From Klebsormidium nitens (Eukaryota; Plantae; Klebsormidiophyceae): a DNA stretch of 44,432 nt. The notes below the pieces were generated by a model that saw only the letters and a list, made by a program, of their open reading frames with translations, was not told the origin of the DNA and did no database searches. Below are positions 7,721-42,598 of the stretch, one piece after another. How positions within the stretch are numbered: position 1 is the first letter of the stretch; each line of letters starts with the position of its first letter. The DNA lies in the NCBI GenBank assembly GCA_000708835.1, contig DF237633.1, positions 1 to 44,432 of the forward strand. Reading direction: 5' to 3'. Position numbers and translations under genes: made by a program.

Positions 7721-10386
7721 ATGCAGCAAGCTCATGCTACGGCTGCACAGGCACAACAGCAAGCTCAGGCTGCTGCCGTTGCAGCTGCTGCAGAGCAGGT
7801 AAAGGCCTCGCCTCCTTCCAAGTGGGAGAATAAGGCGAGCAACCCGCCCATTCTGGAGTGGTTCGATCAGATCGAAGAGTATCTTCGGAATACGCCTAAC
7901 GCTAAGTACCTATTTGCGTTTGGCGTCTTCATATCTGAATGGGAAGCCAAGGTCGTATTGGTTCTTCTCAGTATGTTGTGTATCAGCGTGCGAACCCAGG
8001 GTTGTATCCTCGGAATGCTCGTCAGTTTTTCAGGGACACCATGACTCGTGGGTATGGTCTGAGGACTCCCATTCAGTCTTATTGGGACACCTGGAATAAT
8101 CTCAAGCAGGGATCCACAAGTGTGGATGAGTACAACGTTGCTTTCGAGCAAGCTGCTACTAACCTTGCCGCTGAGATTACAGACGAGCAGATCAGGATCG
8201 AGAAGTATCGGTCTGGTCTCCATGTGGATCTGAAGAAATTGTGCAGAACGTCTCGCAACGGTACTCGTTGGAATGCTCTGCGTGATCCTATGAAGTACGC
8301 TACTTCGCAGTGGCCAATGATCGAGGAACGCTTGGAGCGTAAGCCTGCCCAGTCCACCAAGTCGGTGGCTGGCAAATGTAAGGCGTCCGGAAGTGGCTCC
8401 GGGAGGACGTCGAAGGCGGGGCTGTCTGCTGCCCTTACGGACGAGCAGTACGCTTATAACATGGCGAACCGCCTGTGCCACAACTGCGGGAAGCCTGACC
8501 ATCATGGCATGTTGCAGCAGACTCTACTGAGGAACCTCAAAATAGCAGCAATAATGGGAAGGAACAGAAGAAGGGTAGGAAGGATTTTCAGAAACGCTAG
8601 GCAGTGCAGGACTGTTGTCTAGTGTTGATAACTCTGTGTTAGATCTGTCAGAACAAGACTTCCTGACAATATCAAACATTACTGGTCGTATCTTTGATAT
8701 GGGAGTTCGTCGTTCTGAAGATTCTATTTCCACATATNNNNNNNNNNNNNNNNNNNNNNNNNNNNNNNNNNNNNNNNNNNNNNNNNNNNNNNNNNNNNNN
8801 NNNNNNNNNNNNNNNNNNNNNNNNNNNNNNNNNNNNNNNNNNNNNNNNNNNNNNNNNNNNNNNNNNNNNNNNNNNNNNNNNNNNNNNNNNNNNNNNNNNN
8901 NNNNNNNNNNNNNNNNNNNNNNNNNNNNNNNNNNNNNNNNNNNNNNNNNNNNNNNNNNNNNNNNNNNNNNNNNNNNNNNNNNNNNNNNNNNNNNNNNNNN
9001 NNNNNNNNNNNNNNNNNNNNNNNNNNNNNNNNNNNNNNNNNNNNNNNNNNNNNNNNNNNNNNNNNNNNNNNNNNNNNNNNNNNNNNNNNNNNNNNNNNNN
9101 NNNNNNNNNNNNNNNNNNNNNNNNNNNNNNNNNNNNNNNNNNNNNNNNNNNNNNNNNNNNNNNNNNNNNNNNNNNNNNNNNNNNNNNNNNNNNNNNNNNN
9201 NNNNNNNNNNNNNNNNNNNNNNNNNNNNNNNNNNNNNNNNNNNNNNNNNNNNNNNNNNNNNNNNNNNNNNNNNNNNNNNNNNNNNNNNNNNNNNNNNNNN
9301 NNNNNNNNNNNNNNNNNNNNNNNNNNNNNNNNNNNNNNNNNNNNNNNNNNNNNNNNNNNNNNAGGCATAACCGTAAGTCCTTCTTCTCGGACTATGCGTT
9401 TGGCGAACGATGTTGTTGTTGAAGATATTCTGGGTGAGGCGACAGTGTACGTCCAATTAGGGGCGTTTCACAAGCCTGTGAAGTGCTATGTCATGAATTT
9501 ATTGTACGAAGTGGATCTTATACTTGGCGATGAGTTTATGGACAAGCATAATTGCATTATGCATTATGGCAAGAATTGCGTGATGATCCAGAAGGGGAAA
9601 AGAAATACAACTGTGAAAAGCCCTGCTATTCCTCGCTTGCAAGTCGTTGAAGAAAAGAAAGCTAATCCCAGTGTGTTGTCTTATTCGCAGATGAAGCGGT
9701 TGATGCGGAAGGGCGTTCCTATGTACTTGGCCTCGCTGAAGCCAATGGACGATTGCGTCCCGCCCCAGGCCGTCGACGCTTCATCCGTAGCTGGCTCTGT
9801 TGGGTCTCCTACAACTGTGTCCCATGAACAACATGTCCAACCGATCGACCCCGTCTCAAGTGAGAAGAAGTGGGTTTCCGATTTGCTGTCTGAAATTTTT
9901 GAAGTGTTTCAGGGTCCAATGCCGGTTGACTTGCCTCCTATTCGTGCAGAAGGTGACAGTATTCCTACCGAGCCAGGTCATCCACCTACGTTTATGCAGA
10001 TGTACCGTTTATCTCCTTTGGAATATCGTGAGTTGGAAAACAGGTGACTGCGTTTCTTAAAGCGCAAATTGTGGAGTTTTCCCAATCTCCGTATGGAGCA
10101 CCTGTTCTGTTTGTTCCAAAGCCCAACGGTCGTGGTCTTCGTCTGTGTGTGGATTATCGAGCGCTAAACTCGATAACCATCAAAAACCGTTGTACGATTC
10201 CTCGTATTGATGATCTGTTAGACGCTGTGTCTGGATCTCAATATTTCACTTCGCTTGATCTTACGTCTGGCTACCATCAGATCTTGATTTCGGAAGAGGA
10301 TCGTCCGAAGACTGCTTTTCGTACGCCGTTTGGGCATTTCCAGTTCAAAGTGTTGATCGAAGGTTTGACGAATGCTCCGGCAACGT
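7721..10386 (+). mobile_element. Degenerate Ty3/gypsy retrotransposon: gag, protease region and RT N-terminal half
   Basis: gag with EWFDQIEEYL, LKQGSTSVDEY and zinc knuckle CHNCGKPDH (frameshifted). Protease C-terminal DLILGDEF. RT reads [66 protein letters not shown]. Frameshift at about 10042. Spans the 625-N gap. Confidence 0.93.
8738..9362. other. Assembly gap (625 N)
   Basis: Run of N. Confidence 1.
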
Positions 10387-10827
10387 CTGACCTCTAAGGC
10401 TCAAGCAGAGATACGTGAAATACAGGATGAACACGCCAACCTGGATTCATCTTCAGCTTGTATGCTACGGGACCCACAACCTGCTCGACTTCAAATGGAC
10501 CAATCCATTTGGGGAGAAGCTTGCGAGAAGTCTCGCCACGCTTAATGTTAAGATACTTCGTACTCAAAAGAACCTTATCTCCCACAGAGAACGTTTTCTC
10601 TATTCGACGCTGGTCTGCATCCGCTTTCTGTCTCTGTTGAGCTGCAATTAAACACTTGCGAGCAAAGGCGAGAGCAGATTGCCAACGCTCAACGAAAGGA
10701 ACAGACGCAGGGTGCACATCCTCCAACTTTTCACCCGGTGGAGTCCTTGGGTTAGAGCCGGAGTTAAGGAAAAACGGTGTCTGACCTACAGAAGAGTGAA
10801 ACGCTGAGTTATGAGCAAACTCCGCTC
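10387..10827 (-). mobile_element. Inverted Ty3/gypsy integrase C-terminal fragment
   Basis: Minus strand reads ...QRQKADADQRR..FSVGDKVLLST...KLLPKWIGPFEV..VGPVAYKL..HPVFHVSLLEP*, the GPY/F region upstream of a chromodomain position. Confidence 0.92.
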
Positions 10828-10847: not shown

Positions 10848-11410
10848 TTGGAAAAGCAGGTGACTGCGTTTCTTAAAGCGCAGATTGTGGAGTTTTCCCA
10901 GTCTCCGTATGGAGCACCTGTTCTGTTTGTTCCAAAGCCTAACGGTCGTGGTCTTCGTTTGTGTGTGGATTATCGAGCGTTAAAGACTCGATAACCATTA
11001 AGAACCGTTGTACGATTCCTCGTATTGATGATCTGTTAGACGCTGTGTCTGGGTCTCAATACTTTACTTCGCTTGATCTTACGTCTGGTTACCATCAGAT
11101 TTTGATCTCAGAAGAGGATCGTCGTACGCCGTTTGGTCACTTTCAGGTCAAAGTGTTGATCGAAGGTTTGACGAATGCTCCGGCAACGTTTCAGACCGTT
11201 ATGAATTCGATCTTTTCACCTTATCTGAAGAAGTTTGTCGTCGTGTATTTAGATGACATTCTTATCTTTTCGAAGTCTGAGGAAGAGCACCAGACGCATG
11301 TGCGTATGGTTTGAGATGTCCTGCGTCACGAGAAGTTTTACGTGACGAAGGCTAAATCTAAATACGCTCAGACTGAGATTCAGTACTTGGGGCATATTGT
11401 TAATGATCGA
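10848..11410 (+). mobile_element. Second Ty3/gypsy RT fragment including the YLDD motif
   Basis: Paralogue of 10034-10386, continuing FQTVMNSIF..VVVYLDDILIFSKSEEEH..*..YLGHIV. Lacks the 15 bp encoding PKTAF, has a frameshift and a stop, and ends at about 11410. Confidence 0.92.
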
Positions 11411-23386: not shown

Positions 23387-26300
23387 TCAAAGGTCGTCGA
23401 AGAAGCTGCTACCTTTCGGCTTCTTCCCTGCCTTTTTCCGCTTGCCTTTCCGCTTGGACTTGCGACTCTTGGGAGCTGCAATTAACACGGAAGGAACGAC
23501 CCATCTTAACAACTTACAGATGGAATCTCATAGCGATGGTTGACTGAGCAACTGAGATCGGCAAATATGAAATGCAAAGTCGCACAGCAGAGTCTCATAT
23601 CGAGGTGCCTTTAAACCCTCGAGGCAGCCCGCGGATTGGGAGCGTTTTCCGGAGATGGTCAGATCGCAATCGTCCAGAGTCGCAACACCCTGACCCCTCG
23701 ATCGCGAGTTGCTCACAATACATCAGATACGTTATCCTACAACCACTGGTCAATTTCTAAACACCCCCCAAGACAACAAGCAAGCAGACCTCACGATCTG
23801 GGCATGACTTCCAGCGGTACTCCCCAAGAGAAATTCGATCCATTAGACACAACGCCCCCTCCCACTGAAACGACCCGTTCGCAACGAAAGCTGTGATTCT
23901 GCCTGTCGAGGAAACGCGGCCCGGACGCCTTCCCGTCGCTGCTTCTACCATAAGACGGCAAAACGGCAGCGGATCGCAACACATGTGACTCGCAGAAGGG
24001 TTTACAACAAAGATTGACAGCACAACGCGATACAGTCCACACAGCCCGTGACAACCGGCCCACCCGTTATCATCAAGGCAGCTCCCGGTGTCAACTGCTC
24101 TATGTTTGACTTCAAGTTCGTCCTTTCTCTCGGAAATCACGGCATTCCCAGAATTTGTCTGCTCATGCGCTTATGCACCGGACAGGGGTCGCCCAGACTT
24201 CAGATTGGTTCACCATTAAAAACAGAGCCCGTGATTCGAATCGCACTCACCATCACTGTCCTCGTCACTCTCCGTGTCCGCCACGTCATCCACCTTGGCC
24301 TTCCCCTTATCCGCAACCATCACCGGCGGCCGCCCGGAGCCGCCCGCTTCGTCCTCTTCCATGGCTTCTGGCTTTTCTGCCGACTCTAGTTGCCTGCCCT
24401 CCTTCGCTTCGTCCTCGTCGTCTTCTTCGAGCAGATAAGCCGTGTCCCACAACTGCGCGAATAGTAACATATAACAGCGGTAAGCTATGTGATCTAGGGG
24501 AGAGCCTATATGTAAGCTCTGACGAAGGAAGGTCGTAATCCTGAAACAGGGTGAGGTGGATAATCACGGAACACACAAGCTACGCGAGCTGGGGAGCCGT
24601 TACGTGAGCTTTCAGGAGAGAAGATCCTGATGCTAGACCAGAGATCCGGGGGGTGAACGGGATTATGAACCGAAACGCTGTTCTTGTGATCCATAATCTG
24701 CTTATGATATCCCCGGGCGACTGTCCTAGCTGGATTTGAGGACGAGTGCAGGAGAGAAGAAAGCCCGACGTTCAAAAAGGCACTGTGGCTGAATGTATAA
24801 AGGCAGCGACCAATGACGAAAGGGGTTGCAAAACCAGAGTAAACGGCGAAAGAAACCATTCGCTGTGGTGATGGAATAACTTCGATGTTCGAAGTACGAC
24901 CGACGGGTGTTGAGTCCTTGACCTTCTGAACCGTTACTTCGCAGCTCAATTTGACAGATGCTGACTCAACCGGCGCTGGAACCTTTTCCGAGCACTTCGG
25001 CTGCGGCGTCGATTGGATGGCGAGCTTTCCGCATTTGAGAGGAGAAAGCGCTGCCGATTCTTCCACAAAACAGTAGGAACTTTGAATCAGACACCTGCGA
25101 CAGCTTTGTTCATCGTCTCGCAAAGAAGTGGATGAGACATAAGCATCCCTTTCGACAGAGAACAGTTAAAGTTATGAAACCGACCCTCTCCTACGAAGAG
25201 AGTAACGATATGCATCTTCAGTCGATATCAGCCAAGAACGACAAACACAAACAGAGGCGCTGGTTATGCGTGTTCCCTATGAGTATGATGCTCCCGTTAC
25301 CAGCTCGTCACGTGGCTCGGGCTCAACATCTGACGTCACCTGTAGTTGCCAGGAAGTCACGCACGAGAAAAGGAACGTGATCTACAAGTGCTTTAAGCAA
25401 AAGCTCAGCGATAGAGGAAAGTAAAGGGCAGAATGAGAAGCCCAAGGAGAACAATCAAGGCAGATAAAGCACAGACTAGAAAGGAGGAGGACAAACAGGG
25501 ACGGAAGAAAGAACGCAAGACGCGCCCACCTTGAGAGTGTGGTCGTGAGAAGCGCTGACGAGCGTCCGGCGGTCTGGAGAGAACGCTGCATCGCCACGTG
25601 ACAAACAGTCAGGACCAGACAATGTGCAGATTATTAGGAGGTCCGTACGGGTTTAGTTTGAGATGTGCCAAGGATCGAGCCTTGACATGTCCCCGAATAA
25701 CACTTGGAACTTTGGGATGAGTCTTTTAGAAGGGATTACGCTTTCTCGTCTTTGTCGCTCGGCCAGACAAGTCATTTTCCGACCCGTCAATCAATCCGTG
25801 AAAATGGGAACGCCCCCCATACGCACTTATAACAACCGCCTGGCTCAAGTTCGAATCTTAGCTCGATCAGAACCGCACACTTGTCCCGACTTGGACAGCT
25901 AGCAGCAAAGGGGAAGTCTAAGCGCGAACCGAGTGGGATGACACGACTCTCCCCCAACCGCTCGATCAGATACTCCGTGGCTTTCCCCACAATCCCGAGC
26001 ATCCGTATCGCGCACTGTAAGAGCTTTCCTATGTAAGCAAGCCGCTCGTGACTTGCGAAACTAAGAGAACGCAATATGAGAAGAGGATGAACAAAGCGGA
26101 GAAACGATTTCTACCCAACCGTTCAATCGGATACGCCGCGGATTCCCCCACGATCCGGAGCATGATGTTGCGCAGAAAAGACTATTCAGGAGGATAACCA
26201 CTGCTCCCGACTTTGAAACAGAAAAGAGGTAAAAACCGGTAACGAGACGGAGAATCGGAGAAAATGGAGACGGAAATGGAGAATAGAAACGGAAGCGGAG

Positions 26301-29300
26301 AACCGCGAGACGGAAAGCAAGCCCTGGTTCTGACCCAGCCGCTCGATTGGATACTCCGCATGTTCTCCCACGATCCCGAGCATCATGATGGGCACTCTAA
26401 AAACTCATTTATTAGAACTGCTCCCGACTTGAAGAACAGAAACAATGCGAAATCCGAAACGAGGAACGGGAGGAGGAATTCAATACTCACCCAGCCGCTC
26501 AATTGGATATTCGGCATGTTCCCCCACGATCCCGAGCATCTTATTGGGCAGAACACTGACGATCCTAATCAGCCCGTCGCTCGACCCGGTGACGACCGTA
26601 TCTTCGTCCAGCCGCACGAGGGCGTCCACCGAAGCGGGGTGGCCGGGGAAACGGTCGCTGCAATCGTTCCACGCGCCCCAGGAGTAGAGGCTCAGAACGC
26701 CGCTCTGGGATCCGCACACGATCTTGCGCCCCTGCTTTGTGGTGACCACGCTCAGGAGCTCGTCTTCGGCGTTCTCGGACCGGGCTTCTAACTGCAACGT
26801 ACGAGGTCTGAAATCATAATCTGCTTCAACGTGTCGTCGAGAACGGTGCGAAATGAGCATCCTGGGAATTTGTGCGTTGTGGAATGATATCTTGTTTGAT
26901 AGTGACGACGCTCAGAAGCTTGACGTTTGCCTTCTCGTTCTCAGAGCGCGCTTTTGACTGCACGCCAGGACACAAGCCGGAAGAGAATGAACAGCATCCT
27001 GAAAACGTCAACGGTTCTAAACGTGCTTTGAAAGTGCTCTAAGAGCCGCACAAGATTGTGCGCCCCTGCTTTTTGATCACGACGCTCAAGAGTTCGTCTT
27101 CTGCATTTTCGGACCGTGCTTCCAACTGCGAGGAAGAAGTTCAAAAACAGACTTTAGTCAGCGTCATCCGAAAAGCGCCGGAAGCAGCCAGAGCGTGGGA
27201 TGTACCTGAGATATACGGCGAGCAAGAAACAGGTTCAGAAGGGCGGAAAAGAGCGCTGCCGTGTGTTCTTCGCAGAAATGCACTGAGAATCACGAAAACT
27301 TGCGCAGGTGCGAAGGTGGCAGACGGGAAGCATGTCCCCGCCCGTCGACTTCCAGCTCCTCCATTCCAGACCCCCAGAATCTAAAAATCAACCTCCAGAG
27401 ACACTCAACAAAGCTGAACAATATCCATTTTTCTGTGCTCCCCACCCTGTTTTTCCGCAGGTTGCAGACAGAGAGCATGCCGTCCCCGCTTCTGTAGCGT
27501 TCCTACTACTTACAAATGCCCAAAACCCCACCTTCCCCGGACCCGAACCCGAAAGGCCAAGCACTCCAACTAATGCTTTAAAAGATTTCAGATATCGTAG
27601 CCTCTAAAGCCTGCAAGTCTAGATAACCCACCTTGTTTTTCCGTAGGTTGCAGACAGAGAGCGTCCCGTCCCCGCTGGCGGCCAGCAGGTGCTGCGAGTC
27701 CGCCACGTGTTCAAAATCCGCAATAAAGTCTTCGTGCACGTCGAAGAGCGCCGTGCAGTCCTGCGCGCGCGTGTCCCAGAGCTGTGGAGGCAGGAGAGTC
27801 ACATGACGTCAGCTTTTCCCTGAGCTTTAAGGGGTCTTTTATCCCATGTGGCTTGCGGCGACATCCAAATAACGGTTAACGAATACCCGTCGCTGCGAAT
27901 CGGCCCACAACGTCCTGTTTCAGGACCAACGAGAAAGAGAGGCTCAAACTTCGAGTATGTTTTGTGTTCAGATTCAAAAGCTGCGGGTCAATCTGTATGC
28001 AAGCTTGCAGGGAGCAAGGTAGTAAACAGCATTGGTTTGCTTCGGAAACAGCGGGTAAAGGATCCTCAACCTAAAGCCCAGAAACTGCCGTACAGACAAC
28101 CTTACATATGGTTTTTTTTCTTGTGCCACTTTGAAAAAGAGAAGGTGTCAGAAAGATCGTTTCGTAAACCCAGATCAAATATCAAAGGGAGTCGAAGCTA
28201 CAATTCAATAAGAGCTGTACCCCAAAACCGCGTCATCTAAGGCAGTTCGAGCATCGAAGACGCCGGCATATGTCTGTTTGCTGTTCTTCTTAGACGCGCG
28301 ATCGCCATTGAGATTTTGAGCTGCTGCCGATACTCTGCGATAAGCCCATCGATGAGATTTGCAGCACTTCTGAGGCGCACAAAAGAACACGCTGCAAACC
28401 CACAGATCTGACCGGTGAGGTCTGCTGCAAAACGAGAGGCAAAATACATCGGAAAAAGAGGACGACATAGTTAAAGTAGCAAAGGGAGGCTCTGCTTTTA
28501 GCAGAGACTTCAATTCTTAGCAAAGAGGACAGATAACGTCCGTATCTTTAGCAACACTGGGATTCAACCAAGTTCGAAACCGACAGATCATGCATTCAAG
28601 AGCACTCCTGTAAACTCGACGGCACTGCATTGAAGGCAGCAATCTAATTAGAAAGCTCATCGCAGCAAACTTCCGGACAGGGCGTCAGGAACCTTTTTTG
28701 GGTTTTGCAACTGCCTCGAACTCCTACGAAAAGAAGAGGCATCCGAGGAAGACTTAAAGCCTCCACCGCTACGTCGGAAGGGTCCTAAAGGCGATCAAAG
28801 CAGGGTCGATGCGCAAACACCCTTCACACCGACGTCAACAGCATCAAAACGCATATTCTACTGATATCTCTAGTCGGCTCAGGTGTCCCGTCTTTGTTTT
28901 GTTGGGCTTCATAGGCGCCTGTCCAATCCCGGACAGGCGCCAAAGCTTTGGAAAGGAATGCGAAGCATGCAAAACAGAGTACCAAGGATCGAAGGCCAAT
29001 GCTTTGAGCGCCAGAGAAACGGCACTACGGCAAGTCCAGCACTGACATTCTTTCAGCCGAGATTCAAAAATCGTCGAGCCATGGCTAAACAAACAACTGT
29101 GCGGAGTTGCGGGAAGTCAGATCCGGGTTTTCTAGGCCCATAGCATTTCGTCAGTGTTCCTCCTTCGGAGGAATCGGTGCCCAGTGCGTTTCATCATCCT
29201 TCCCGAACTCCTTGCTCAAAGGCGCTTCGCTCAAAGCGAGGCCTCAAACGTAGCCGAGCCATTGCTTCGGCCGCCAATCAAAGCAAAGCTGGAATCCAAA

Positions 29301-31395
29301 AGAAGACGCAGCAACATGACCATATGTCAAGCCAGCCGAAACCCAAAAGAGACAAATAACAGCGTAAGAAGTATAGGAGGCCAGCGCCTCGTGAATTAGA
29401 GCATACGCTGCATTAGCCAGAGACACACAAACAACTTGTACATTTCACTTTCTTTTGATTTCTTCCATTGCGGCCGTTGCTGGTTCTCTGCAGAGTTTCG
29501 GATATCGAAGCTCGCACCCTGATGGCCCAAAACTACACCTCCAAAAGCAAGAAGTACCCCAAATCTGAAACTGCAAACTTTGTAGCTCGCACCTTGATGG
29601 CCCCCTCGTCGTCCCCAGTCGCGAGCGTCGTCTCCGAGAGCGCCTCCATGCGGTTGATCGCGGCCGCGTGCGCGTTCTCGAGGCGCGCAACCTTCTGCCC
29701 GGTGATTGCGTCCGTGCACAGGATCGAGCGGTCCGCGGAACAGCTCAGCAGTAACCGCCCGCCGTCCATGAAGCGCAGCGCACGGCACGTATCGGTGTGG
29801 GCTGCAAATCAGCGACTTGAGTTCATATCTTTGAATCGTTCATGCTCGAACCAGCTTTTGAAATTGGAAAGCACCGAATCAGCGGTCCGCGGAACAGCTC
29901 AACAGCAACCGGCCGCCGTCCATGAAGCGGAGCGCACGACACGAATCCGTGTGGGCTGCAAAGAAGGGCATCGACTACGACGTCATGTTTTGCTCGGAAC
30001 AGAGGCTTCAGAGCCGGAGAGCACAAGGTTAGCATCGAAAAAGATGGCTCAGAAGCAGCCAGCCACCGCCCATGAACCGAAGCGCACGGTATGAGTCGGT
30101 GTGGGCTGCGATTCAGTGGAAACGAGTGTACTTTTCTGTTTACTCTGTGCTCGGTATCAGCTCTCGGACTGGAGAGAAGAAGATACGATTAAGAAATTGA
30201 TAGCGTATGAGCAGCCGGTCGCCGTCCATGAAGCGAAGCGCAAGGCATGAATCGGTGTGGGCGGCGATTCGTGGTAAAGAACAAGCTTTTCCGTTTACCC
30301 TTTGCTCGGTATCAGCTCTCGGACTGGAGAGAAGAAGATACAATTCAGATACGATCAATAGCTTATGAGCAGCCGGCCGCCGTCCATGAAGCGAAGCGCA
30401 CGGCACAAATTGGTGTGCGCTGCAATTCAGGTAACAAAGAGAAGTTGTGAAGGCACCTCTTGCTTGGAACAGCTTTGAAACTGGAGAGCACAAGAACTTG
30501 GTTCATGAGTTTAGAACGAGTACAAAATGTATATTTCAGGAACAAAGAACTCGTCAGCAGCCGGCCGTCGTCCATAACTGCGCGAAAAGAGTCCGTGTGC
30601 ACTGCGGATTGGGAACACCGTTTAGTTTCCGGATCACTCCTTGCTCGATACAGGGCTTTCAATCCCGGAAGAGCAGAACAGATGATCAAGAGACAGGTAG
30701 GTCAGCAGCAGCGGGCCGCCGTAAATATAGCGCAATGCGCAGCATGAGTCGTGTGGGCGGCAGAAGTACCGAAGAATCCTAACAATCAACATCCAGCTTT
30801 CATTTCGGATGCTCGTTAATCCGGATCTGCTTAGAAGTGAGCAGGAAATTCAGGATTTATGTCAGAGCGAGGGCTTTAGCACTCGAGGGTCTGTAGGGGC
30901 TTTCAGATGATGCCCCAAACACAAACTTATCTCCTGAGTGCCCCTTTTGAATGGTGAGTGCCCAGAGTTTCATAATAATAGTGCCGCAAGCCTGACCATG
31001 ACAAACCTTTGTCTCAGCATTATTGGCCGGGTCTGACGACAGCCTTCTTGCTGAAACATCAGGTATAGAAACCCACTCACGCTGTGATTGATGGAAAAAA
31101 CCTTGCCGAATGATCATAATCCCAACTCTTACGGTTCCCTTCTTGTCCGCTCTCTCGCCGGCCACGTTCCTCAAACGAAGAACTGGTCAGAGAAGCAGCC
31201 ATTATCAAAAGAAGTAAGCACAATAAGCTCACCTGGATATGATAAGAGCTGGCGCGGCGGTGTGTCGTCCCCATAGCGAAAGATCTCAACCTGCCCGGTG
31301 ATGATTCCCGCCGCGACAACCGGAAGCTCCGGATGGATGTGGACATCGAACGGCTGCGCCTCGAGTGAGATCTGGGCCGCCTCGCCCCCCTCCAT
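23387..31395 (-). CDS. WDR55: WD40-repeat protein 55 (JIP5-like ribosome biogenesis factor), 7 exons, 389 aa
   Basis: Exons 31395-31233, 29801-29593, 27781-27632, 26791-26491, 25585-25530, 24452-24251, 23475-23387; phases consistent, 1170 nt. Motifs PFDVHIHP..VAAGIITG, HTDTCRA, LATGDDEGAIKLWD, EDELLS, DRFPGHP.SVDAL, GSSDGLIR, GEH.EYPIE, SASHD, acidic tail, FFDDL*. Confidence 0.93.
25950..26384 (-). repeat. 3 degenerate copies of WDR55 exon 4 3' end plus donor
   Basis: Copies of MLGIVGEHAEYPIERL|GT. Donor-equivalent positions 26334, 26114 and 25953; real donor 26490. Confidence 0.9.
26891..27129 (-). repeat. 2 degenerate copies of WDR55 exon 4 acceptor plus 5' end
   Basis: Copies of CAG|LEARSENAEDELLSVV. 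Acceptor G at 26958 and 27126; real at 26792. Confidence 0.88.
27441..27490 (-). repeat. Degenerate copy of WDR55 exon 3 3' end plus donor
   Basis: SGDGMLSVCNLRKNR|GTGGG versus real SGDGTLSVCNLRKNK|GTGGG, 186 bp away. Confidence 0.9.
29881..30763 (-). repeat. 6 degenerate copies of WDR55 exon 2 acceptor plus 5' end
   Basis: Copies of CAG|(A)HTD(S/T)CRALRFMDGGRLL. Acceptor-equivalent positions 29956, 30106, 30262, 30420, 30602, 30758; real at 29802. Confidence 0.92.
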
Positions 31396-32061
31396 TTGTT
31401 GGTGTGATTAAGGGGGGGGGAGGGAGATGTTCTGGAGGGTGGCAGCAGGCGACTTGTCTTTACCTCACTGCGGTGGCGAGGACAGTTCTGTGCATCAGAG
31501 ACGCTGACTCAGTTCAACGACTATTTTCAACTGTGCATCAAGATCGTCGGTGAAAGGGAGCTTGTTCTTGGTTAGTGACGTTGTGATGGGTTAAAGTTGC
31601 TTAATTGTTGCAGTGCATCAGACACGGGTGAATATGACGCCTCTATTGTCGCCTAAACTTGCAGAAGCGCTAGCAGCTCTTATTTTTACAACAACATTGA
31701 TCACTCGGGATATGAGTCAACTTGCAACTGGAATCAGAGGTAGACAAGGGGCGCAAACGCCACCAAAGGCCCGAGCTTGCAGAACCGAGTCCAAAGAACG
31801 CCGCCCAGAAAGTTTCATGACATTAAGGATGCAATTGCTGGCATCAACATTGCTCACCTCGAAACGGGGTGTGCGTCCAATGTCCAAATGCGCCGGGATT
31901 CCAGTCCCTTGTACTAGAATTACTCGCGCCTTGGTTCCCTCAAACCTTCCTTTGGTCCTCTTCAAAACCACTTCCTGCCGCCTGATATATGTGAGACCCT
32001 CACTACCGACACGCTGTGTCAGGCTCAACCACCGGTATTTCACATGCCCACGGCGACTAAG

Positions 32062-32152
32062 CTATTTGTGCCCACCACTCTTAGCGGCGGCTTTCCCCTC
32101 CTCAAATTCTGTTTTCACTTTTCTGAACTGCACGGTCAGGGTCTGTGGTACC
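32062..32152 (-). repeat. Degenerate copy of the COA3-like CDS 3' end including the stop codon
   Basis: 32062-32152 aligns to 32185-32274 (GTTDLDRAVQK...AAAKSGGH.*), with a 1-bp insertion. Confidence 0.88.
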
Positions 32153-32184
32153 CTCAGATAGGCTACGCAGGGGCACAATGTAGG

Positions 32185-32373
32185 CTATGCGTGCCCACCA
32201 CTCTTCGCGGCAGCTTTCTCCTGCTCGATTTCTTTCTCCACTTTCTGAACCGCACGGTCAAGATCAGTCGTGCCCACCGCCTTCATCGAGTACACATACG
32301 CACCGACAACGAAGGCGGACAGCGTCCCTGCAACGAGCAGGTTCTTGAGGCGGAGCGAGCTTTGAGGGGCCAT
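32185..32373 (-). CDS. COA3: Plant-type cytochrome c oxidase assembly factor 3-like small membrane protein, 62 aa
   Basis: MAPQSSLRLKNLLVAGTLSAFVVGAYVYSMKAVGTTDLDRAVQKVEKE: KN..VAG.L..F..G.Y.Y.M.AVG single-TM plus coiled-coil pattern of the plant COA3/CCDC56-like family. ATG at 32373. Confidence 0.8.
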   Translation of the reverse strand: MAPQSSLRLKNLLVAGTLSAFVVGAYVYSMKAVGTTDLDRAVQKVEKEIEQEKAAAKSGGHA

Positions 32374-32814
32374 ATTCAAGCGCTGTTCTCAAATGTCCAG
32401 CGGAAGACGAACGCCAAGGGCAAAAGAGGTAGGAGAAATGCGCAGGAGAATGCTCCTGGTTGTCCAGAAACAGCAGCTGGAGACCTTTCTGATTGGAGTG
32501 GTTGTTGACACATTAGGCCACCTTGCCAGGCGTCGTTCATTACCAAGCGCCGGTTATCATGTCGGGAGAAATTTAATGTGAGATAGGGACTGGGTGGAAG
32601 CTAGGAACGGCTGTGGTAACGGCGCCAATCTCCATGTGGTGTCAAAAAGCCTCGCAGTCTCGAGACATTCACAGAATGTTTTGGATGTCAAATGTTGCGA
32701 GTTCTCCTCTCTGCCTCTGAGTCTGGGCAAGCGCTCTCAAACGCCGCTTGGTAGCCACTCCTTTTTCTCCTGAGACCAGGATTGAGGTAGCTGCATCATT
32801 AGAGAGAGAGCAGA

Positions 32815-35800
32815 ATGGGCAGAAAGAGTGGCGGAAAGCGGCAGGCGCGGCCGCAGGGGCTGCCGCCGAAGGCGAAGAAGCAGAAACGGGACGCGGGAGG
32901 TGCTGTTTGTGAGCCCATAAGCGATAGTGAGGATGGGGCGGTTTTGCCCACCCCTTATGAGTACGAGGAGCCAATGGCTGATGAGGAGCTGAAGAAGAAT
33001 AGGCGCTATGATGACGTGGACGTTTACGAATACGAGCTTCCAGACGATTTTGAGGTGAGCTGCCGGTGCAGTTTCTGGCAGGGGTTGCTTCCCCTTACTT
33101 CAAACTGGGTCTTTGGTTTGTGGGTTGTCCTTTAAAAAGGTAGCGAGCAGCTGTTGACGCCGCTGTGATCATGCTCGTTGTCACTTCAGACCAGGAGCGA
33201 ATTGAGCAATTGATTTGTGGCACACAACTCGTTAGCAATGCGTCAATACTACCTGAGCTGGATCCAAGTAGTAGATGCATCGGGCTACCGACGCGCCAGG
33301 AACCTCGAATGCACCACCCAATGCTGTCCAAAGTTTCTTCTCCACTACTTTCATCAGCACCATTACCATCAAGGTCTCAGTCTCATAGTGTTGGCTGAAT
33401 TGAGCCAACTCAGTTGTTGCGTCAGGTGAATCTTGGCGGATTGAAGCGTCAGAGGTCGCGGCATCAAACTCCTGATGCTTGTGCAAAAATGAACCTAGCG
33501 TGTTTCCACTCTTCGATTTTATCTCTGATTCATTGGACCTGCAAGCAGCCTGTATATGATTCCTGTTTCTGCCGTGGCGCCCATTCTTCTTGCACAAGGC
33601 AGGCCTAACGCTCCAGGTTGCTTCATGCATATGATTATTTGGCTGTTTTGGTGCTTACATTTTCCCAGAAGGTTGAGCATTGAAAAATGTCATGTCGCTG
33701 GACATGCGCATAAGAACATTCACTAGCAAGTTCATGAGCTCTCCCACTCATTTGAAATTCTCTAGGTGGTATGATTGAATTTAAGCATTCAAAGCACCGT
33801 CTCCTTTCTTCTTTCAGGACGAAGAGATCGACGAAGACGCCGCTTTTACGGAAGAAGACAAGGTCAAGTTCGGCAACCTCTTTGAAAAGGACGGCGAAGA
33901 AGGCGCTTCGGAAGGGGACTCCGACCGCGACGATGACGACGGCGATATCGATCTGAACAGCGAGGACGAGGGTTCTGACGAGTCGGAGGAACTAGACCCG
34001 GATGATTTCTCGGACGAGGAGCTGGCGGGTGGTAGAGACGAAACAGAAGCTTTGGGGGAAGAAGATGAAAGCGAGGATGTGGGGGGGCAAGATGAGGAGG
34101 GGGCCGATGAGGGTGAGGAGTACGAGGAAGCGGGGGGGAGAAGAGCGGGGCAAAATGAGGGGGGGGAAGAGGAGAGCGACGAGGAAAGTGATGAGGAGGA
34201 ATTGGACGAGGAACGGCATAGGAAGATGTTGGAAGAGGTGATGGGGGGGGCGCGCGGGCGGGAAAGCAAGAGGCGGGGTCAGGTGGTGCTTTCAGAGGCG
34301 GTTCCGGAGTCGGAGTTCAGCTTGAACCCAGGCGGGGGGACTGCAGGTATGGTCTGCGGACATGTTGTTTGACACGAGTTTGTTGGTCTGCCGCTAGAGT
34401 TGCGTCACAGCATGCCGCGATGTTAACTGACACATTCGTCATGGGTTGGAACCGATTCTTGGTCAAGCTCCGAGGCATACTCCTCTTGACACCAGAGCCC
34501 ACTTGGCTCCTACTGTGGTTAGTGTTTGGTCCCTAGTTTTGACCCCTTCCGAGAAATAGCGAAAGTCATCAGAGGGGTCATTCCGCAGTGATTGAAGCTT
34601 CCGCAGAATGACTGGTCAGCCTCTTTAGTTCTATATAACAATTCGTGAATAAAAGCAACTATTGATTTCGTTGTTACGAAGCCTGGTTGTTTAGCAGCGT
34701 TGTCCTAAGCCACCTTGTCAAGTTTCCAAAGTGGGCGTCGTCGTCACCCTTGTTAGACGTGAGTCTTTTCAAGGATAGGGTTAGACTTCAGTTTATTTTG
34801 CCCCTGGCAACGTGCAGTGGGCAAAGAAAAACGAATACTCCAAACCCAGCCAGGATGGGTTTGTATGGTTGAGTCGGCAGTGCCTCAAACACGATCCGAC
34901 AGCACACATCCGGAAGAAAGCATCGATCATCCGTGTGGATGCACGGCGGGAAATTTGTTTTTAATGATACGGCAGTGAGCGCCACGCCACTCCTTACACA
35001 AAAAGCATTGACAGCTGTGCTGACAAAGTCGGCGCTTTCTTCACAGGTGGCGGCGGCAGGATCAGCGTCGCCGACTTGGTTGGTTCTCTCGACGGCTCCG
35101 CCGGAAACCTCGCCAGCCTCCGAAAACGCCTCGAGAAAGTCGAATCAGGCGCGGGGCCTGTTTCCGCGCCCCTCGCGCGCGCTCTCAAAGAGCGCGTCGA
35201 GCGCCAGGCGGGGTATGAGCACACCAAATCAGACGTCGCCAAGTGGCAGCCCCTCGTGAAAGCAAACCGGGAGGCGCCCACGATCGTGTTCAGTGCGGAT
35301 AAGAAGGGGACGGTCGCGCAGCTATCGACGGCGGGGATGGCGGCGAAGTTTGTGCCGACGACGGATTTGGAGAAGGAGATTAGTGAGCTTTTGAAGGAAA
35401 GTGGCGCGGAGGACGGGAGGACCGTGGAAGCGGGGGAGGCGCTGGAGCTGAATAAGCTTACGGTGGAAGAGGTAAGGGACACCTCATTACCGCAAGCTTT
35501 TTGCGTTTCAGAGTCTTTGACATTGCTATCGGTCTAAGTGAATTGGGATTAAGGAACTGTATAGAAACCTGGATGCCTAGACAAAAGGGATTGTGGGCTT
35601 CAACAATACCAGCTACTGAAAATCACCTAGATAGATGAGCAGTGGGCTTCTGCGAAGGCCGATCCCCCTACTGCCCAAGAGTGGTCTTCGTTTCAAATGA
35701 CTTCAATCTACTCTTCTAAGCGCTGCGATTTGTCACCTTTCTCCCCAGGTTTTGGACCGCAAGAAGTGTCTCGCCAGGATGCGCGGGCTCCTCTTCCAAC

Positions 35801-38800
35801 ACAAAGCCAAAGCGAAGTCGTCAAAGAAAGTTCATGACACTGTCCTTTCCTGTCAAGTTATGGTTCTAAATACGCCCCCTGTTTAGTGGGACATTTCACC
35901 CTCCTTCCGCAGGTTTTGGAGCGCAAGGAACGCCTTGCCAAGATGTGCAGCCCTCTTCCAGCACGAGTTGAAAGCGAAGCCCGTCAAGAAGATCCAAGAA
36001 GATCAAGGACCCTTTCTTCTATAACCCTCTGTTGATCACCTCAATTGATACGCCTGAATCAGCCCCCCCGATTCTATACCCCACTCCCCACCACCCCGCA
36101 GGTTTTGGAGCGCAAGGAGCGTCTTGCCAAGATGCGCAGCCTTTCCTTCCAGCACGAGTCCAAAGCCCAGCACGTCAAGAAGGCCCAAAATTCGTTCTGC
36201 CTGAATCAGGGATGGATGATCTGAATACACCCGTCTGATATTATATTCCAGCCCCCTTCTCGCAGGTTTTGAGCGCAAGGGACGTCTCGCCACACTGCGC
36301 AGCAGGGAGCACGAGTCCAAAGCAAAGCGCGTCAAGAAGATCACGAGCCCTTCCTTTCTTCTTTGTGTTTGTTATCAAACCACCTCTCCGAATTGACAGT
36401 ACACTTCACCTTCTTTCCGCAGGTCTTGGAGCGAAAGGAACGGCTCGCCAAGATGCGCAGCCTGCTGTTTCAGCACGAGTCGAAAGCGAAGCGCGTCAAG
36501 AAGATCAAGAGCAAGGCGTTCCATCGGGCGCAGGCCAAGTCGCGAGCCAAGGAACGCGCGAAGAACGGGGGCGAGGTCGACCGAGAAGCCGCGCGCGAGG
36601 AGGCGCTGAAAGAGGAGTTCAAGCGCGCGCAAGAGAGAATGACGCTGGAGCATAAGAACACGAGCAAGTGGGCGAAACGAGCGCTGAAGAGGGGGCTCGA
36701 GGCGCACGTGGAAGACGGGACGAGGGAGGCGATCGCCGAGCAGCTGAGGATGCACGCGGCGCTGACGAGGAAGGTGAGGAGCAGAATTGGTTGCCTCCAT
36801 TTTGCCTTAAAGAGGGCGTCAGACTATAGCATACCGTCCCGGCTCGAGTTTTCTTGGACCAACTCGGAAGCACGGTGACTCCTAGCACAGTTGGCAAGGG
36901 TGCTTGACCTTCGCCGTGAATTCAGCGATCGAAACTCGGTCGGAGCAACTTTTCTCCTTTTTCCGCACGCCGCGCATGTCGAACTCACACCGGTTTTCAA
37001 ATTTCACGTCACGCGGGCAGACTTTCCGTGCGATTAAAATTCACCGTACGCGGCTGACGTCAGGCGTTACGGGTCACAGGACGCCCTCTTTAAGTCAGGC
37101 CTACGTTCATCCGTCCCCCGGGCTGAAAGACTGAACGAAACCCAAAGCTAACATGCTCCACTCTGGTAACCATCCTAAGTCCCCAAACCAACGTAACTCG
37201 TCCCTGGGCAACGACCCAACTCAACGTAGCCGTATTTCAACGGAGTTATGATACTACTGCCTGTTTCCGAAGGGATGTGTCATTTGAGTTGGGTTGCAGC
37301 AGTTTCGGTCCTCACTGTATTTGCGATTGAGCACTTTTCTGACTCCTTGTTACCGCGGGAGACCTGGACCTGCATATTCAAGTGCGGGTCGTTTTCCTGG
37401 GCTGTTTCTGTGCGCCCTTCTGGAAGGATATTGTGCCCGTTGGTTCTCGTCCTTCTGCCTGTGACGCTTGCGTGAGCCCGTTCTCTGTGCCACTTTTTTG
37501 GAGCTCGCACTTTGACATTTGCTGCACTTGATCTGTGGCACTTGTTTGGCTAGTGAACCCGATGGGTTTGAACACTTTCGGTTTAGGAAGTCAAAAAGGC
37601 GGTTACCGGCGCAGTCGCATCCTGTACACTCTTTCAAAAAGAACACCTCCAGAGTTTTTGGACGTTGAAGCAGCCTGCGAAAGCTGGTCAGGTTCAAGCC
37701 GTTCGATATTCCTCACTCGCCACGGATTTGGCCTTTCTCGAGGACGCTAGTCATTGCATTCCGTAGTCTCTCCGCTTGTGAACTGCTTGAAAGACCCTTT
37801 TCCCTCTTTGGCGACTCCTTCACATCTCCAAAATTTGAATCCCTCTTTTCTGACATTTTCTGGGTTGCTATACCTGATTTTCGACTTCCGTCCTGTCAGG
37901 TCGATCGGATGGACGACAAGAACAGCAGCGACGAGAGCAGCAGCGAAGACGAGTACGATGACGTCACTGCTGACGTGGCGGACGGGGAGACCGCCGAAGG
38001 GCTGCGGCTTGCTCGCGAAACGGCCCGTGACAAGGCGGCGGTGCTCCGGGTTTTGGATGAAGATCCTGAGGGGGATAAACCTAGAAAGGGGCTCTTCGCG
38101 CTGCCATTCATGGTAAGAATGCTTGCGGAATGTCGTGTGTTTGCACGCAATTCAAGGAAAAGCATCCGGATGCTTTGGATGGGTTTGCGAGTTACACTGC
38201 GATGATTTTGCATGAGGACCCTGAGGAGGACAAACCTAGAAAGGGGGCTCTTTGCGCCGCCGTTCGTGGTAAGAATGCTTGCAATTCTCTCTGATTACCA
38301 CTCGGTTCGAGGAGAACCGTTTAAGTGGTCTGGTTCGGCCTGCTGTTTACATGGGCGATGATTTGGTCGAAGATTCTGAGGGTGAGAAGTTTCGGAAGGG
38401 GCTGTTTGCGCTGTCGTTCATGGTAAGGTGGCGGAAAGATATTCGCTTGCACCTTCAGGTTTTGGAAGGGTTTCTCTGAAGGGTTTGGTTCGGCTTGCTG
38501 ATTACATGGGCGATGCTTTTGGAGGAGGATTGTGACAGAGAGAAGCTTAGGAAGGGGTTCTTTGCGCCGCCGTTCATGGTCAGGGGTCGGGGGAAAGTTT
38601 GTCTCGTACCAGCGTCTGGTTGTGTGGGAGGAGTGAGGGAACTTTGGTCTGCCAAAAGTTAGCCATGAAACAGCGGTACTGGGTGACTGTCGTACCTTTC
38701 AGCTACGCCAACCTCCTGGAACATTTCAAATATATGCATTCCTATCGAAGCCGAGGACAATGATCGTCAAAACCTCGCTTTCTGCTGCAAATTTCATCAG

Positions 38801-41800
38801 CCTTTTCCCTGCGTTCTCAACTGCCATTAAAAGGGATTCCGTATCCTTGCGTTCAAGTTCGCTGCTCTTTGTCAGGACCTACTGCCTTTGCGTTGCTATC
38901 AATCGCCTTGACGAGTTCTCGTCATGGGTTGTCCTAGTTCTTGCAAACGAAAGTGTCAGCCAGTAAAACGCTGAGTGTTTGTGGTCGTGTTCGTTCTGTG
39001 GCGATGAGATTGGACCGTCGCCATTTCCTTTGCGACTTGCTTGATTTCATTCCCTGCTCCACAGAAGTTGCGCTGCCAGACGCTCCGCAATCCATAAGAT
39101 GTCGCATTCTGACGCACTTGTCCTTCGTCTTCCTGGTTTCTCTTCTCCTGGTCACGAAGTGTCAACTGCTGGCGCAAAGAGCCCTTGCTTTATCTAGATG
39201 CGTTCCTCAGCATGCTCATTTCAATGTTGCTTAGTCATCGTTGTTTTGCATTCTTTGTTCTATCTTGATGTATACATGTGTTCGTTTGCTTCGTTTTTCA
39301 TTCTACCCGCCTCCAGTGATCGTCAGTTTCCGTCCGTCGTTGTTCCTCGTCTCTATGTTTTGTAAAGTCGTGGGGAGCATGTCTCCGGTACCTGTGAAGT
39401 CCCCAGAATTGATTTTCAAACCGGAAACACGTCTCTCACTTCAAGTGTTAAGATGTTCTTAACCTGTTTAAAGTTGTCAAAGACATCTCTGTGATTCCTG
39501 TGACATTGTCAGAAATGTCAGCATGCGTATTGCTCTCTACAGGCACGTGCCTTGGACCGCAAGAGTCAGGAGGCACGTGACGAGGCGATGGCGCTGCTAG
39601 ACGAGCTGGAGCACCGACAGGACCCCGAGGCGACAGCTGGCAACCCCGAGGACGCGCCACGTGGCACCACCGAGGCGCTGCCACCTGGCACCAGTGGCCG
39701 CATGTCATTCGGCGCGGCGGCTGCCGGTGTGAGTAGGCCCCACGCAAGCGACGATGAGGGCGGCGATTTTGAGGGGGACTCCGACCTCGAGGGGGGGTCG
39801 CAGAGCGAGGGGGAAGCAAAGGGGGAAGCAAAGGGGGAGGGAGAGGGGGGACGTCGGAGAGGGGGGGCAAAACGGGGGCCTGCTGAGGGGAGGGGAAAAG
39901 TGGAGATTCTGGAAGGGGAGGGTGAGTTGGCGCAGCTGGGGCTGCCGGGGGGGTTCCGGACAGCAACGGAGGGGCCTGTGAGCGTGGGAGGAGGGGGGGT
40001 GGCGGAAAGCATCGAAAACGGGGGGGGTGACGTCAGCATGGAGGGAGGGGGAGAGGGCGGGGAGCGCGCTCACTCGTGGTTGTTCCGGAGTGGGGGGGCC
40101 GAGAAGAGTAGGGCGGAGGGGGGAGTAGCGGACGAAACGATCTCAGCGGGGGCCACGGTTAAGAAGCATAAGCGGGGTTTAAACGGCGTGGAGATTGCGG
40201 GAGTAAAAGGGGGAATGAACGGTACTCAGAAAGCGGGTTCGGAGAGTTTGCACGTAGATGGGGAAAACAGTGCGCAGATAGCGGGTTCATCGGAAGTACG
40301 GATAGGCCCTGCGGAAGAGAGTGGCGCGAAGAATGCAAACGAAGGGAGTGATGGTCTTAATGCACGACCAGAGCAGAATGGGGGGGTAGATGCGGTGACG
40401 TTTTTGGAGGGGGGAAGCGAAGACGAGGGGGAAGGCGTTCCGGGCGCAGATCTGCTGCAAACAGACCTGTCACAGGCGGAACTGGTCCGAAGGGCGTTTG
40501 CGGGGGATGACGTGGAAGCGGATTTCGAAGCTCGCAAGGCTGAGATGGTGAGGTGACGTCAGCTTGGTGGATGTCAGCTGAGGCGTGTTGAAGTGACTGT
40601 GTGGCGAGAGTTGTCCTGGACTTATTGTTGGGCTGATGGTCACACCAGGTGTGGTGACGAGTGCCGGAACCTTGTCTAATGAGAACGCATACATGTTTAT
40701 CAGTGGCCTCGACGAGAGCAAATATGAGCTGATGCAAGGTCGTCTTTCCGCAGCAGTTCGGCTCTCGTCGAGCAGTCCGTCTGTTACTTATGAACGAAAG
40801 AGAGATCTGACACTAGACTCGCTCCTTTCTTCACTCTATGTGGGTTTCGTACTAAAGTCGGTTATTAAAATTCTTCCGCCATAATACCGTTGCACGAATA
40901 AGACTTGGCCATCGATGACCCGGTGATTCTCCTTAGTTGGGTTGTAAAGATCTTTCGCCGCAAATTGCTTGTCACTATCCTGATCATCATCTGAACAACC
41001 CGACGTTTCAAATTTACCGCAAAACAAAGAAGTCCCCGCCATCGGCCTGGTCAACCCAATAGATGCGAGGCTTGTACTCCTTGGTTCTTAGATTCAAACC
41101 TGCACAACCTCGCAATATTTTGCTCTTATAATGTCGTTCAAGAGTTTGAGCCTGCTGCTCAACCGAAAGAATCTGGACAAACCCGCCGTCTCCGTTTCGC
41201 AGCTGGACAAAGAAGTTCCGGCCATTGAGGGCCCGGTGCTTCCCCTCACTTGCGGTTCAAAGAATTTGCCACGACTCGCCCGGTCACCTTTTCCGTTGGT
41301 CGTCTAACAAACCCGCCGTTTCCGATTCGCAGCTGGACGAAGAAGTCCCGGCCATTGAGGGCCCGGTGTTTCTCCCGTTGATTGCGATTCAAAACCATTC
41401 CCCACGCCTAGTCTCCTTTTCCGTCATTCGTCTAACAAGTCCGCCGTCTTCATTCCGCAGCTTGACGAAGAAGTTCCGGCGATTGAGGGCCCGGTGACTC
41501 TCCCCGGGTGGGGCCAATGGACTGGCGTCCAGAAGAAGAAGGGGCTCCCCGGTTGGATCGTGAAAGAGCAGAAGGATAACGAGAAGAAGCGGAACCAGGC
41601 GATGGCGAAGCGGCAAGACGCCGGCAGGAAGCACGTCATTATCAGCGAGAAGTGGGACAAGAAGGTGAGGGTGATTGACTATCATTGGAGACACGTGTTG
41701 TCCTCAATGCAGAGCACGTCACTGGGGTTTTGTTCGTTCAAAGCGCGTCCTTCCGGGAAATTTGTTCCAGAACGTTGGCAGGACTCCTGTCTGCTCAGGT

Positions 41801-42598
41801 GTCCTGTGAGCGCTTCCAAGAAAGAAGGCCCGTCAGCTGTTGAGTTATATATAGACACGGTGCAAGGTGCTCGTAAGCCCTTAAAATTGTGATCGTAGAC
41901 GCTGAGATCGGATTGTGAGAACGTGAATATGAAGAAGTTTTTTTGAAAGCATAGCGCAGGCGTTCTGGACCTTGAGCTCCGGTTAAGCTTACCTGTAAAG
42001 TGTTTGCGAAAAAACGCTCTTCTTCGTGTTTGCTTCTTCAATGCTCCCCTGTAAGGGTGCTGCATATGTCTGATTCGACTGGCGGCAACACAAAGCTCAT
42101 AGGAGTTGATTCCAGTCTGGGAGGAGCGCGGAGCAGGTGGCGTTCTTGAAAAGGCTGTTGGGTGCACGTCAGAAGCGGTGACGTGGCATTCCCGGCCTTT
42201 AAGCTCGTTGTGAACAAGCCACATCTTCTCCCGTCTGTACCACGCGGTGACAGGTTGCGAGGTACATCAGGCACGAAGTCACTATGCATGACGTCAGGTG
42301 ATGATGCATTCTTTTAATTCTGGGCTTTGCGTTCCAGGCTGCCAAGTACGCCGCCGAGGGCGTCCCCTTCCCTTTCAAGGACCGGGAGGCCTTCGAGCGG
42401 AGCCTGCGGAATCCGCTCGGCCGGGAGTACAACACGGATTCCGCCCACCGGAACCTGATCCGGCCGCCTGTGATCAAGAGCACGGGGGTGATCATCGACC
42501 CGATCAAGTATGTGAAGCCGGAGCAGAAGGGAAGAGCTGAGAAGCCCAGCGCGGGAAAGAAGGGCAAAGGCAACGGTAAAGATACTTCACGAAATTGA
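32815..42598 (+). CDS. UTP14: U3 snoRNA-associated protein 14 (SSU processome), 8 exons, ~1075 aa
   Basis: Exons 32815-33054, 33818-34346, 35047-35471, 36423-36773, 37900-38112, 39543-40547, 41461-41664, 42338-42598; phases consistent. Motifs KW.PLVK.NREA, LAKMRSLLF.HE.KAKRVKKIKSK, ERMTLEHKNTSKWAK, KGLFALPFM, RRAFAGDDVEADF, LPGWGQW, VIISEK.DKK, VPFPF..EAFERSLRNPLG.EYN. A further 3' exon cannot be excluded. Confidence 0.95.
35735..36350 (+). repeat. 4 degenerate copies of UTP14 exon 4 acceptor plus 5' end
   Basis: CAG|GTTTT(G)GA.CGCAAG... copies start at 35749, 35913, 36102 and 36266; real exon at 36423. All keep AG. Confidence 0.93.
38200..38585 (+). repeat. 3 degenerate copies of UTP14 exon 5 3' end plus donor
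   Basis: Copies of EDPEGDKPRKGLFALPFM|GT. Donors at 38269, 38423 and 38579; real at 38113. Confidence 0.92.
41178..41380 (+). repeat. 2 degenerate copies of UTP14 exon 7 acceptor plus 5' end
   Basis: CAAACCCGCCGT..CGCAG|CTGGAC.AAGAAGT.CCGGCCATTGAGGGCCCGGTG; exon-equivalent starts at 41203 and 41333; real at 41461. Confidence 0.93.

Follow-up and report, generated by a model that had tools for sequence, protein, structure and literature searches.

Exon-edge copies form eight arrays in the WDR55-UTP14 region

The window analysed here, all 44,432 nt of contig DF237633.1 (assembly GCA_000708835.1) from the streptophyte alga Klebsormidium nitens, contains the genes WDR55 and UTP14 on opposite strands, with a short open reading frame (ORF) for COA3 located between them (Table 1). 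Three independent self-comparisons of the window were used to locate repeats. Local direct repeats were confined to eight arrays between positions 25880 and 41504, each composed of degenerate copies of one exon edge together with the adjoining non-coding sequence. We term these copies echoes, and the functional boundary that they resemble the live junction. The arrays occur at 7 of the 26 coding splice junctions of WDR55 and UTP14 (four in WDR55, three in UTP14) and at the COA3 stop codon. This tally comprises the junctions of WDR55 and UTP14, those of the MATE gene and a presumed bestrophin gene elsewhere in the window being left out.

The WDR55 gene model combines spliced RNA contigs from three separate RNA runs with two more exons placed by sequence. 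The RNA contigs define minus-strand exons at 31233-31467, 29593-29801, 27632-27781 and 26491-26791, and the next exon begins at 25585. The resulting translation of 389 residues equals the length annotated for WDR55 on DF237633.1. Introns of 1431, 1811, 840, 905, 1077 and 775 nt separate the coding exons, and a leader intron of 390 nt precedes them.

Table 1 Genes and exon-edge arrays, with positions given in window coordinates
Feature	Position	Strand	Description
WDR55 gene	23387..31395	-	7 coding exons, 389 amino acids; RNA contigs, GT..AG introns, annotated range, Pfam WDR55 match
Donor echo array, WDR55 exon 4	25880..26550	-	live donor 26491; echoes ~26335, ~26115, ~25954; spacing 156, 220, 161 nt; RNA joint exits 26491, enters 25585
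Acceptor echo array, WDR55 exon 4	26702..27147	-	live acceptor 26791; echoes ~26957, ~27125; RNA joint 26791/27632
Donor echo, WDR55 exon 3	27441..27676	-	one 50-nt copy, 186 nt downstream, 92% identical
Acceptor echo array, WDR55 exon 2	29716..30830	-	live acceptor 29801; six echoes; spacing 154, 150, 156, 158, ~185, ~155 nt; RNA joint 29801/31233
Tandem duplicate across COA3 stop codon	32058..32275	-	123 nt, 80% identity
COA3 ORF, unannotated	32185..32373	-	62 amino acids; Pfam Coa3_cc 29.5 bits (cutoff 27)
UTP14 gene	32815..42598	+	8 coding exons, 1075 amino acids; model equals annotated K. nitens protein P0166 residue for residue
Acceptor echo array, UTP14 exon 4	35680..36512	+	live acceptor 36423; four echoes; spacing 164, 189, 163, 158 nt
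Donor echo array, UTP14 exon 5	38051..38590	+	live donor after 38112; three echoes; spacing 155, 155, 156 nt
Acceptor echo array, UTP14 exon 7	40891..41504	+	live acceptor 41461; echoes ~41333, ~41203, ~41020, ~40891; spacing 128, 130, 183, ~130 nt; unit at 40891 weak

Counting the weak unit at 40891, there are about 24 echoes overall, each with an exon-derived part of 44 to 93 nt; copy identity ranges from 65 to 92%. Fourteen of the 25 spacings lie within 150-165 nt. Of the others, one is 220 nt and the rest group at 123-130 or 174-189 nt. Echoes constitute 40-80% of the DNA in six affected introns and 34% across all WDR55 and UTP14 introns. An earlier note on this sequence had described eight arrays, at 7 of 26 junctions and the COA3 stop codon, holding 22 copies with about 40-90 nt of exon end apiece and accounting for much of the intron length. 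Self-comparison on exact gene models bears out this description, and the copy count is nearly matched.

No match between different arrays was found in the self-comparison; each array resembles its own exon only. The repeat finder TRF recovered just two of the eight arrays and is too insensitive for repeats of this kind. By the structure of their units the arrays belong with boundary-spanning tandem duplications, consisting of head-to-tail units that hold both exon and intron sequence, with the exception of the WDR55 exon 3 donor echo. That echo comprises 45 nt of exon and 5-6 nt of intron and is a sharp copy placed 141 nt away. A short AAGGTGGGG motif at 27520-27540, between the live WDR55 exon 3 donor and its echo, resembles that donor and may be the remnant of an older copy.

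Physical support for the arrays and use of the live junctions

A contig from a separate 2017 DNA run spans 25900-29842, three arrays included, with zero differences from the window. Short-read DNA contigs break within the seven-unit WDR55 exon 2 array, as repeats would lead one to expect, and 29843-30156 is uncovered. Were the arrays artefacts of assembly, such a break and gap in cover might be expected. Against this stand the exact match of the independent contig through three arrays, the divergence of the copies, whereas artefacts would be identical, and the presence of the same kind of feature on the metagenome contig of a relative (see below). We therefore consider an artefact extremely improbable.

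The dominant WDR55 mRNA, as represented by RNA contigs from three runs, uses solely the junctions attached to exon bodies, although such contigs lose rare isoforms and low-level use of echo sites could escape them. These RNA joints agree with the earlier claim that the live boundary is the one joined to the exon body, which is so because only splicing at that site restores an intact mRNA. For UTP14, use of the body-attached junctions is read from the annotated protein only. The possibility that the echoes are tandemly duplicated or mutually exclusive exons was considered and rejected, as each echo has a single splice site, frameshifts and stop codons interrupt them and they are absent from the RNA contigs.

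In all seven splice-junction arrays the acceptor copies lie upstream and the donor copies downstream of the live junction. The earlier note had drawn attention to this polarity, and the observation stands; it is not, however, special. Because the duplicated segment spans the boundary, the extra copy falls on the intron side, downstream for a donor and upstream for an acceptor. Polarity is thus a geometric consequence of tandem duplication and tells nothing about mechanism.

Decay of the echoes and growth of the arrays

When read in the live frame, the echoes contain frameshifts and stop codons. Changes assigned to the live lineage fall at third codon positions in 27 of 44 cases (28 synonymous, 16 not), and those assigned to the echoes are distributed 71/69/120 over codon positions 1/2/3. 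An excess at third positions in the echoes would be expected had the copying taken place at various times while the live exon was gaining synonymous changes. Echoes taken early would then retain ancestral synonymous states, as is seen directly in an alignment with the orthologue, where echoes and orthologue have CGC and the live exon now has CGA. Selection on the coding sequence of the echoes, for which the third-position excess might have been taken, was rejected in view of the frameshifts and stop codons and because the excess is expected from staggered copying. Exon-derived parts are better preserved than intron-derived parts, and the same model predicts that the intron part may diverge up to twice as much.

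The AG or GT dinucleotide is kept in 17 of 21 echoes, against about 13 expected from overall divergence by our own calculation. This retention is marginal (P ~0.05) and is not read as evidence of function.

In four of six arrays, echoes farther from the live junction are less identical to the live exon. Exon-side ends differ within the WDR55 exon 2 array (~78 nt vs ~55 nt) and within the WDR55 exon 4 acceptor array (~62 nt vs >90 nt), so that for some copies the live junction must have been duplicated independently. In WDR55 exon 2, echoes 3 and 4 share 81% identity, yet each is only 57-62% identical to the live copy; to judge from this pattern they are copies of each other. Homology over whole units, intron-derived parts included, was found in the WDR55 exon 2, UTP14 exon 5 and UTP14 exon 7 arrays.

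At 35985-36004, where one UTP14 exon 4 echo ends on its exon side, the 10-nt sequence CAAGAAGATC is perfectly duplicated, which shows small-scale slippage within a decaying copy.

A related species carries arrays of its own

Comparison with a related species, as proposed in the earlier note, was made using a JGI metagenome contig (L001) that carries the orthologous locus and was reached via a fragment of protein with 92% identity to UTP14 exon 4. The relative and the window differ by 0.75 at 4-fold degenerate sites. The UTP14 introns of the relative have the same positions and similar lengths, and their sequences are unalignable with those of K. nitens.

The UTP14 arrays of the window, among them the one at the exon 4 acceptor, are lacking in the relative. 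It possesses its own echoes at the exon 3 donor (period 123) and the exon 5 donor (offsets 188 and 332), and shared derived states link these echoes to the exon of the relative rather than to the copies in K. nitens. Arrays that belong to each lineage in this way indicate that the process is ongoing, lineage-specific and recurrent, and in one case has affected the same junction in both lineages. At that junction, the UTP14 exon 5 donor, the echoes of both species (L001 10211-10631; window 38051-38590) each group with their own exon, a pattern that would imply either separate origins at one junction or concerted evolution. With so few arrays, the sharing of a single junction is within what chance would give (~0.35).

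UTP14 intron 3 measures 951 nt in K. nitens and about 890 nt in the relative, though an array of ~740 nt arose in K. nitens after the split. Similarly, affected introns have a mean length of 1078 nt vs 989 nt for unaffected introns. These lengths suggest intron turnover rather than net growth. The earlier proposal of an ongoing duplication process that inflates introns thus holds in part: duplication is recurrent and lineage-specific and its boundary-spanning products persist, but net inflation of introns is not clearly supported by either comparison.

Two further repeats occur in the relative: a purely intronic tandem repeat of 68 nt immediately upstream of UTP14 exon 6, and an in-frame 54-nt duplication inside that exon (L001 11004-11126 and 11260-11348).

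It could be supposed that the echoes are functional, serving as decoy splice sites or binding platforms that tune the (unproductive) splicing of housekeeping genes. The affected genes are indeed housekeeping genes, AG/GT retention is marginally above expectation, as described above, and CAG is kept in four of four UTP14 exon 4 echoes. On the other hand, the echoes are not conserved in the relative, they decay with frameshifts and stop codons, their copy number and spacing are variable and only canonical junctions appear in the RNA contigs of three runs, within the limit that contigs lose rare isoforms. A functional role is accordingly judged highly improbable.

Distribution of the arrays relative to coding boundaries

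Throughout the 44 kb, relaxed thresholds included, no purely intronic or intergenic local duplicate was detected, and self-comparison of positions 1-25000 yielded no local repeats. Background hits in the relaxed search amounted to about 0.1 per 500-nt offset bin.

The location of the arrays was compared with a null simulation in which duplications of the observed lengths were placed uniformly over the region with its arrays collapsed. Events lying entirely in coding sequence were treated as lethal. Decay was neutral for non-coding sequence and five times slower for live coding sequence; the score threshold was that of the real search, and a range of maximum ages was explored. Among simulated detectable arrays, 29-36% spanned a coding boundary. 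The observed figure was 8/8 (P 5e-5 to 3e-4). The earlier note had raised the prospect that the arrays might be no commoner than background duplication would make them; as checked here, they exceed the simulation by this margin. Subject to the limits of the model, arrays in this window are thus truly in excess at exon edges.

An outside control was provided by a metagenome scan with a WDR55 exon. The scan returned no close Klebsormidium relative, its best hit being 72% identical, and the WDR55-homologue loci obtained from it were used as a negative control only. Across 25 such loci from other organisms (~110 kb), one local repeat was found in total.

A possible origin for the echoes

From the sequence comparisons described above, we propose that the echoes are non-functional, decaying relics of recurrent tandem duplications with a unit of about one nucleosome repeat, whose founding events were concentrated at exon edges, probably through phased breaks or slippage. 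To this explanation as a whole, including the exon-edge concentration and the proposed cause, we assign a probability of roughly 0.7. Of its elements, the sequence shows that the copies are tandem, span a boundary, recur, decay neutrally and have a preferred unit near 155 nt.

The proposed sequence of events is as follows. A segment about one nucleosome repeat long (123-186 nt, mode ~155) and straddling a splice junction or stop codon would be duplicated, and this founding event would leave the intron with an extra copy of the junction. The array would then be extended to 2-7 units, both by further duplication of the live junction and by duplication of whole echo units. An echo has one kind of splice site with no partner nearby; under exon-definition splicing it would presumably be ignored and left to decay neutrally. 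Founding events would be concentrated at exon edges and not spread evenly over non-coding DNA. The most likely cause would be staggered breaks or paired nicks that lie roughly a nucleosome's length apart and are filled in and rejoined, or else replication slippage at the nucleosome scale. A preference for exon edges could arise if chromatin were phased on exon boundaries, or if one break were biased to exons, with selection purging the wholly exonic products. The array at the COA3 stop codon fits the version with exon-biased breaks as well as the phased version.

There is experimental precedent for such an origin: small tandem duplications result from paired nicks, or from staggered DNA breaks after fill-in by Pol alpha-primase/CST (PMC8355091, PMC5730883). 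As in those studies, the echoes are short head-to-tail segments whose length would be set by the distance between breaks. They differ in that the published lengths were set by experimental breaks, whereas the echoes, known here from sequence alone, have a mode of ~155 nt and occur at exon edges.

Several observations weigh against the proposed explanation. The link to nucleosomes comes from unit size alone. Units are not significantly centred on the junction (exon share 0.24-0.76, ~10 events). A possible microhomology, TGTGC, was seen at the unit border in one array and was convincing nowhere else. At the WDR55 exon 3 donor, homology does not extend past the two copies, either into the stretch that separates them or outward, so that this echo is not a simple whole-unit tandem duplicate. 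The relative carries a purely intronic tandem repeat, as noted above. Finally, when the exon-derived parts were masked, only two of the seven splice-junction arrays were still detectable; detection thus benefits from conservation of the live exon, a bias that may be larger than the simulation allows for.

The last two of these points also favour an account without any targeting, in which duplications occur uniformly, exonic ones are purged and junction-spanning ones are easier to recognise; selection and geometry would in addition account for the polarity and survival of the echoes. Yet under the simulation, which includes selection, decay and the same threshold, about two thirds of detectable arrays should lie purely in non-coding sequence and none of the eight did (P ~1e-4), and the other 25 kb of the window is likewise without such duplicates. 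On balance we consider it unlikely that targeting is absent.

The sharpness of the WDR55 exon 3 donor echo, a 50-nt copy 141 nt away and lacking flanking homology, is in turn what would be expected of RNA-templated or polymerase-theta-type templated insertions, by which short nearby copies are written into repaired intron breaks. The better preservation of exon-derived cores than of spacers points in the same direction. Nevertheless, units in WDR55 exon 2, UTP14 exon 5 and UTP14 exon 7 are homologous over their whole length, intron parts included, the copies hold unspliced junction sequence, and lower spacer identity is expected if copies were taken at different times from a neutrally evolving live intron. 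Templated insertion is thus a very unlikely source of the echoes.

Returning to tandem duplication, three features hint that arrays grow at the live junction as such, and not simply by virtue of its sequence: the identity gradient, the repeated independent events at the same junction and the lack of arrays away from coding boundaries. More speculatively, and with considerable doubt, a mutational process in Klebsormidium may be directed at functional exon edges, perhaps coupled to nucleosome phasing, transcription or co-transcriptional splicing, such that intron sequence and length represent a steady state between the birth and decay of ~155-bp echoes.

Relation to known systems

The echo arrays are comparable to minisatellites in having tandem units of tens to hundreds of bases and in growing partly by the copying of existing units. 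Unlike minisatellites, each array derives from one unique boundary in the coding sequence of its own gene, the functional junction forms the unit at one end and the arrays share no sequence with one another.

Introner elements are intron-generating transposons of Micromonas, Aureococcus, dinoflagellates and fungi, present as dispersed copies of one mobile family in many genes. They are like the echoes in their nucleosome-scale lengths and in their role in shaping the intron content of a genome. Unlike introners, echoes copy the exon border of the host gene itself, and no sequence is common to the arrays. An introner or transposon origin was rejected, since self-comparison revealed no element common to different arrays.

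Other parallels concern intron gain. In the Rogers model, a tandem duplication holding a splice motif leads to the gain or sliding of an intron, with examples from Drosophila (PMC2891723), the potato RdRp gene (PMC4974935) and an engineered case (PMC3265369). As in Rogers-type gain, a local duplication at the present locus includes splice-site sequence, the outer sites are used, the mRNA remains intact and duplicated exon sequence becomes intronic. In contrast to such gains, no intron has been created, the introns that hold echoes being pre-existing (the relative has them too, at matching positions in UTP14). Furthermore, the published cases are single events, whereas echoes are repeated in up to seven units at 7 of 26 junctions in two adjacent genes. 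No published description of junction-copy arrays at this density was found for Klebsormidium or elsewhere in a search that most subscription journals fell outside. Single tandem duplications, exonic or across a junction, are a textbook route to the gain or sliding of introns, and repeated dense arrays that create no new intron are apparently undescribed.

Gain and loss of intron sequence have mostly been deduced from old, eroded events; those described here are recent enough to be read. The echoes can be dated against the live exon, recur in a sister lineage and are dense (7/26 junctions). If it were true genome-wide, the preference for exon edges would implicate gene architecture or chromatin in the mutational mechanism, and the alga would offer a natural system in which to study how splicing ignores many intact decoy sites. 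The arrays also put gene prediction and read mapping at risk in this alga, a streptophyte reference. The interest of the echoes probably lies in their value as a mutational signature, and not as a functional system.

Other features of the window

RNA contigs from the three runs reach ~550-570 nt upstream of the exon at 31858 and, if colinear with the genome, start at ~32450-32471. They would then begin upstream of the COA3 ORF and cross it (31858-32471, minus strand). The same contigs join 31858 to 31467, entering the exon with the WDR55 start codon. This arrangement suggests a dicistronic COA3-WDR55 mRNA, colinearity upstream of 31899 being deduced from the sizes of the RNA contigs only.

The longest intron of WDR55 (27782-29592, 1811 nt) contains no echo. 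Within it, a low-depth colinear RNA contig from one run lies at 28605-29009 and may represent pre-mRNA or a separate transcript. A loose RNA contig end at 29113 had no other match within the window.

In positions 1-25000, Pfam searches on single ORFs confirmed the MATE gene; the same search, which confirmed MATE only, did not confirm the bestrophin label. GC content at third codon positions (GC3) did not separate the exons of MATE or of the presumed bestrophin gene.

Only two pairs of non-local direct repeats are present in the window, 1-147 with 10681-10827 (86% identity) and 10033-10386 with 10848-11189 (90% identity). These pairs are probably the ends or fragments of mobile elements, and they flank an AT-rich island at ~8000-10000 (GC 0.31-0.37).

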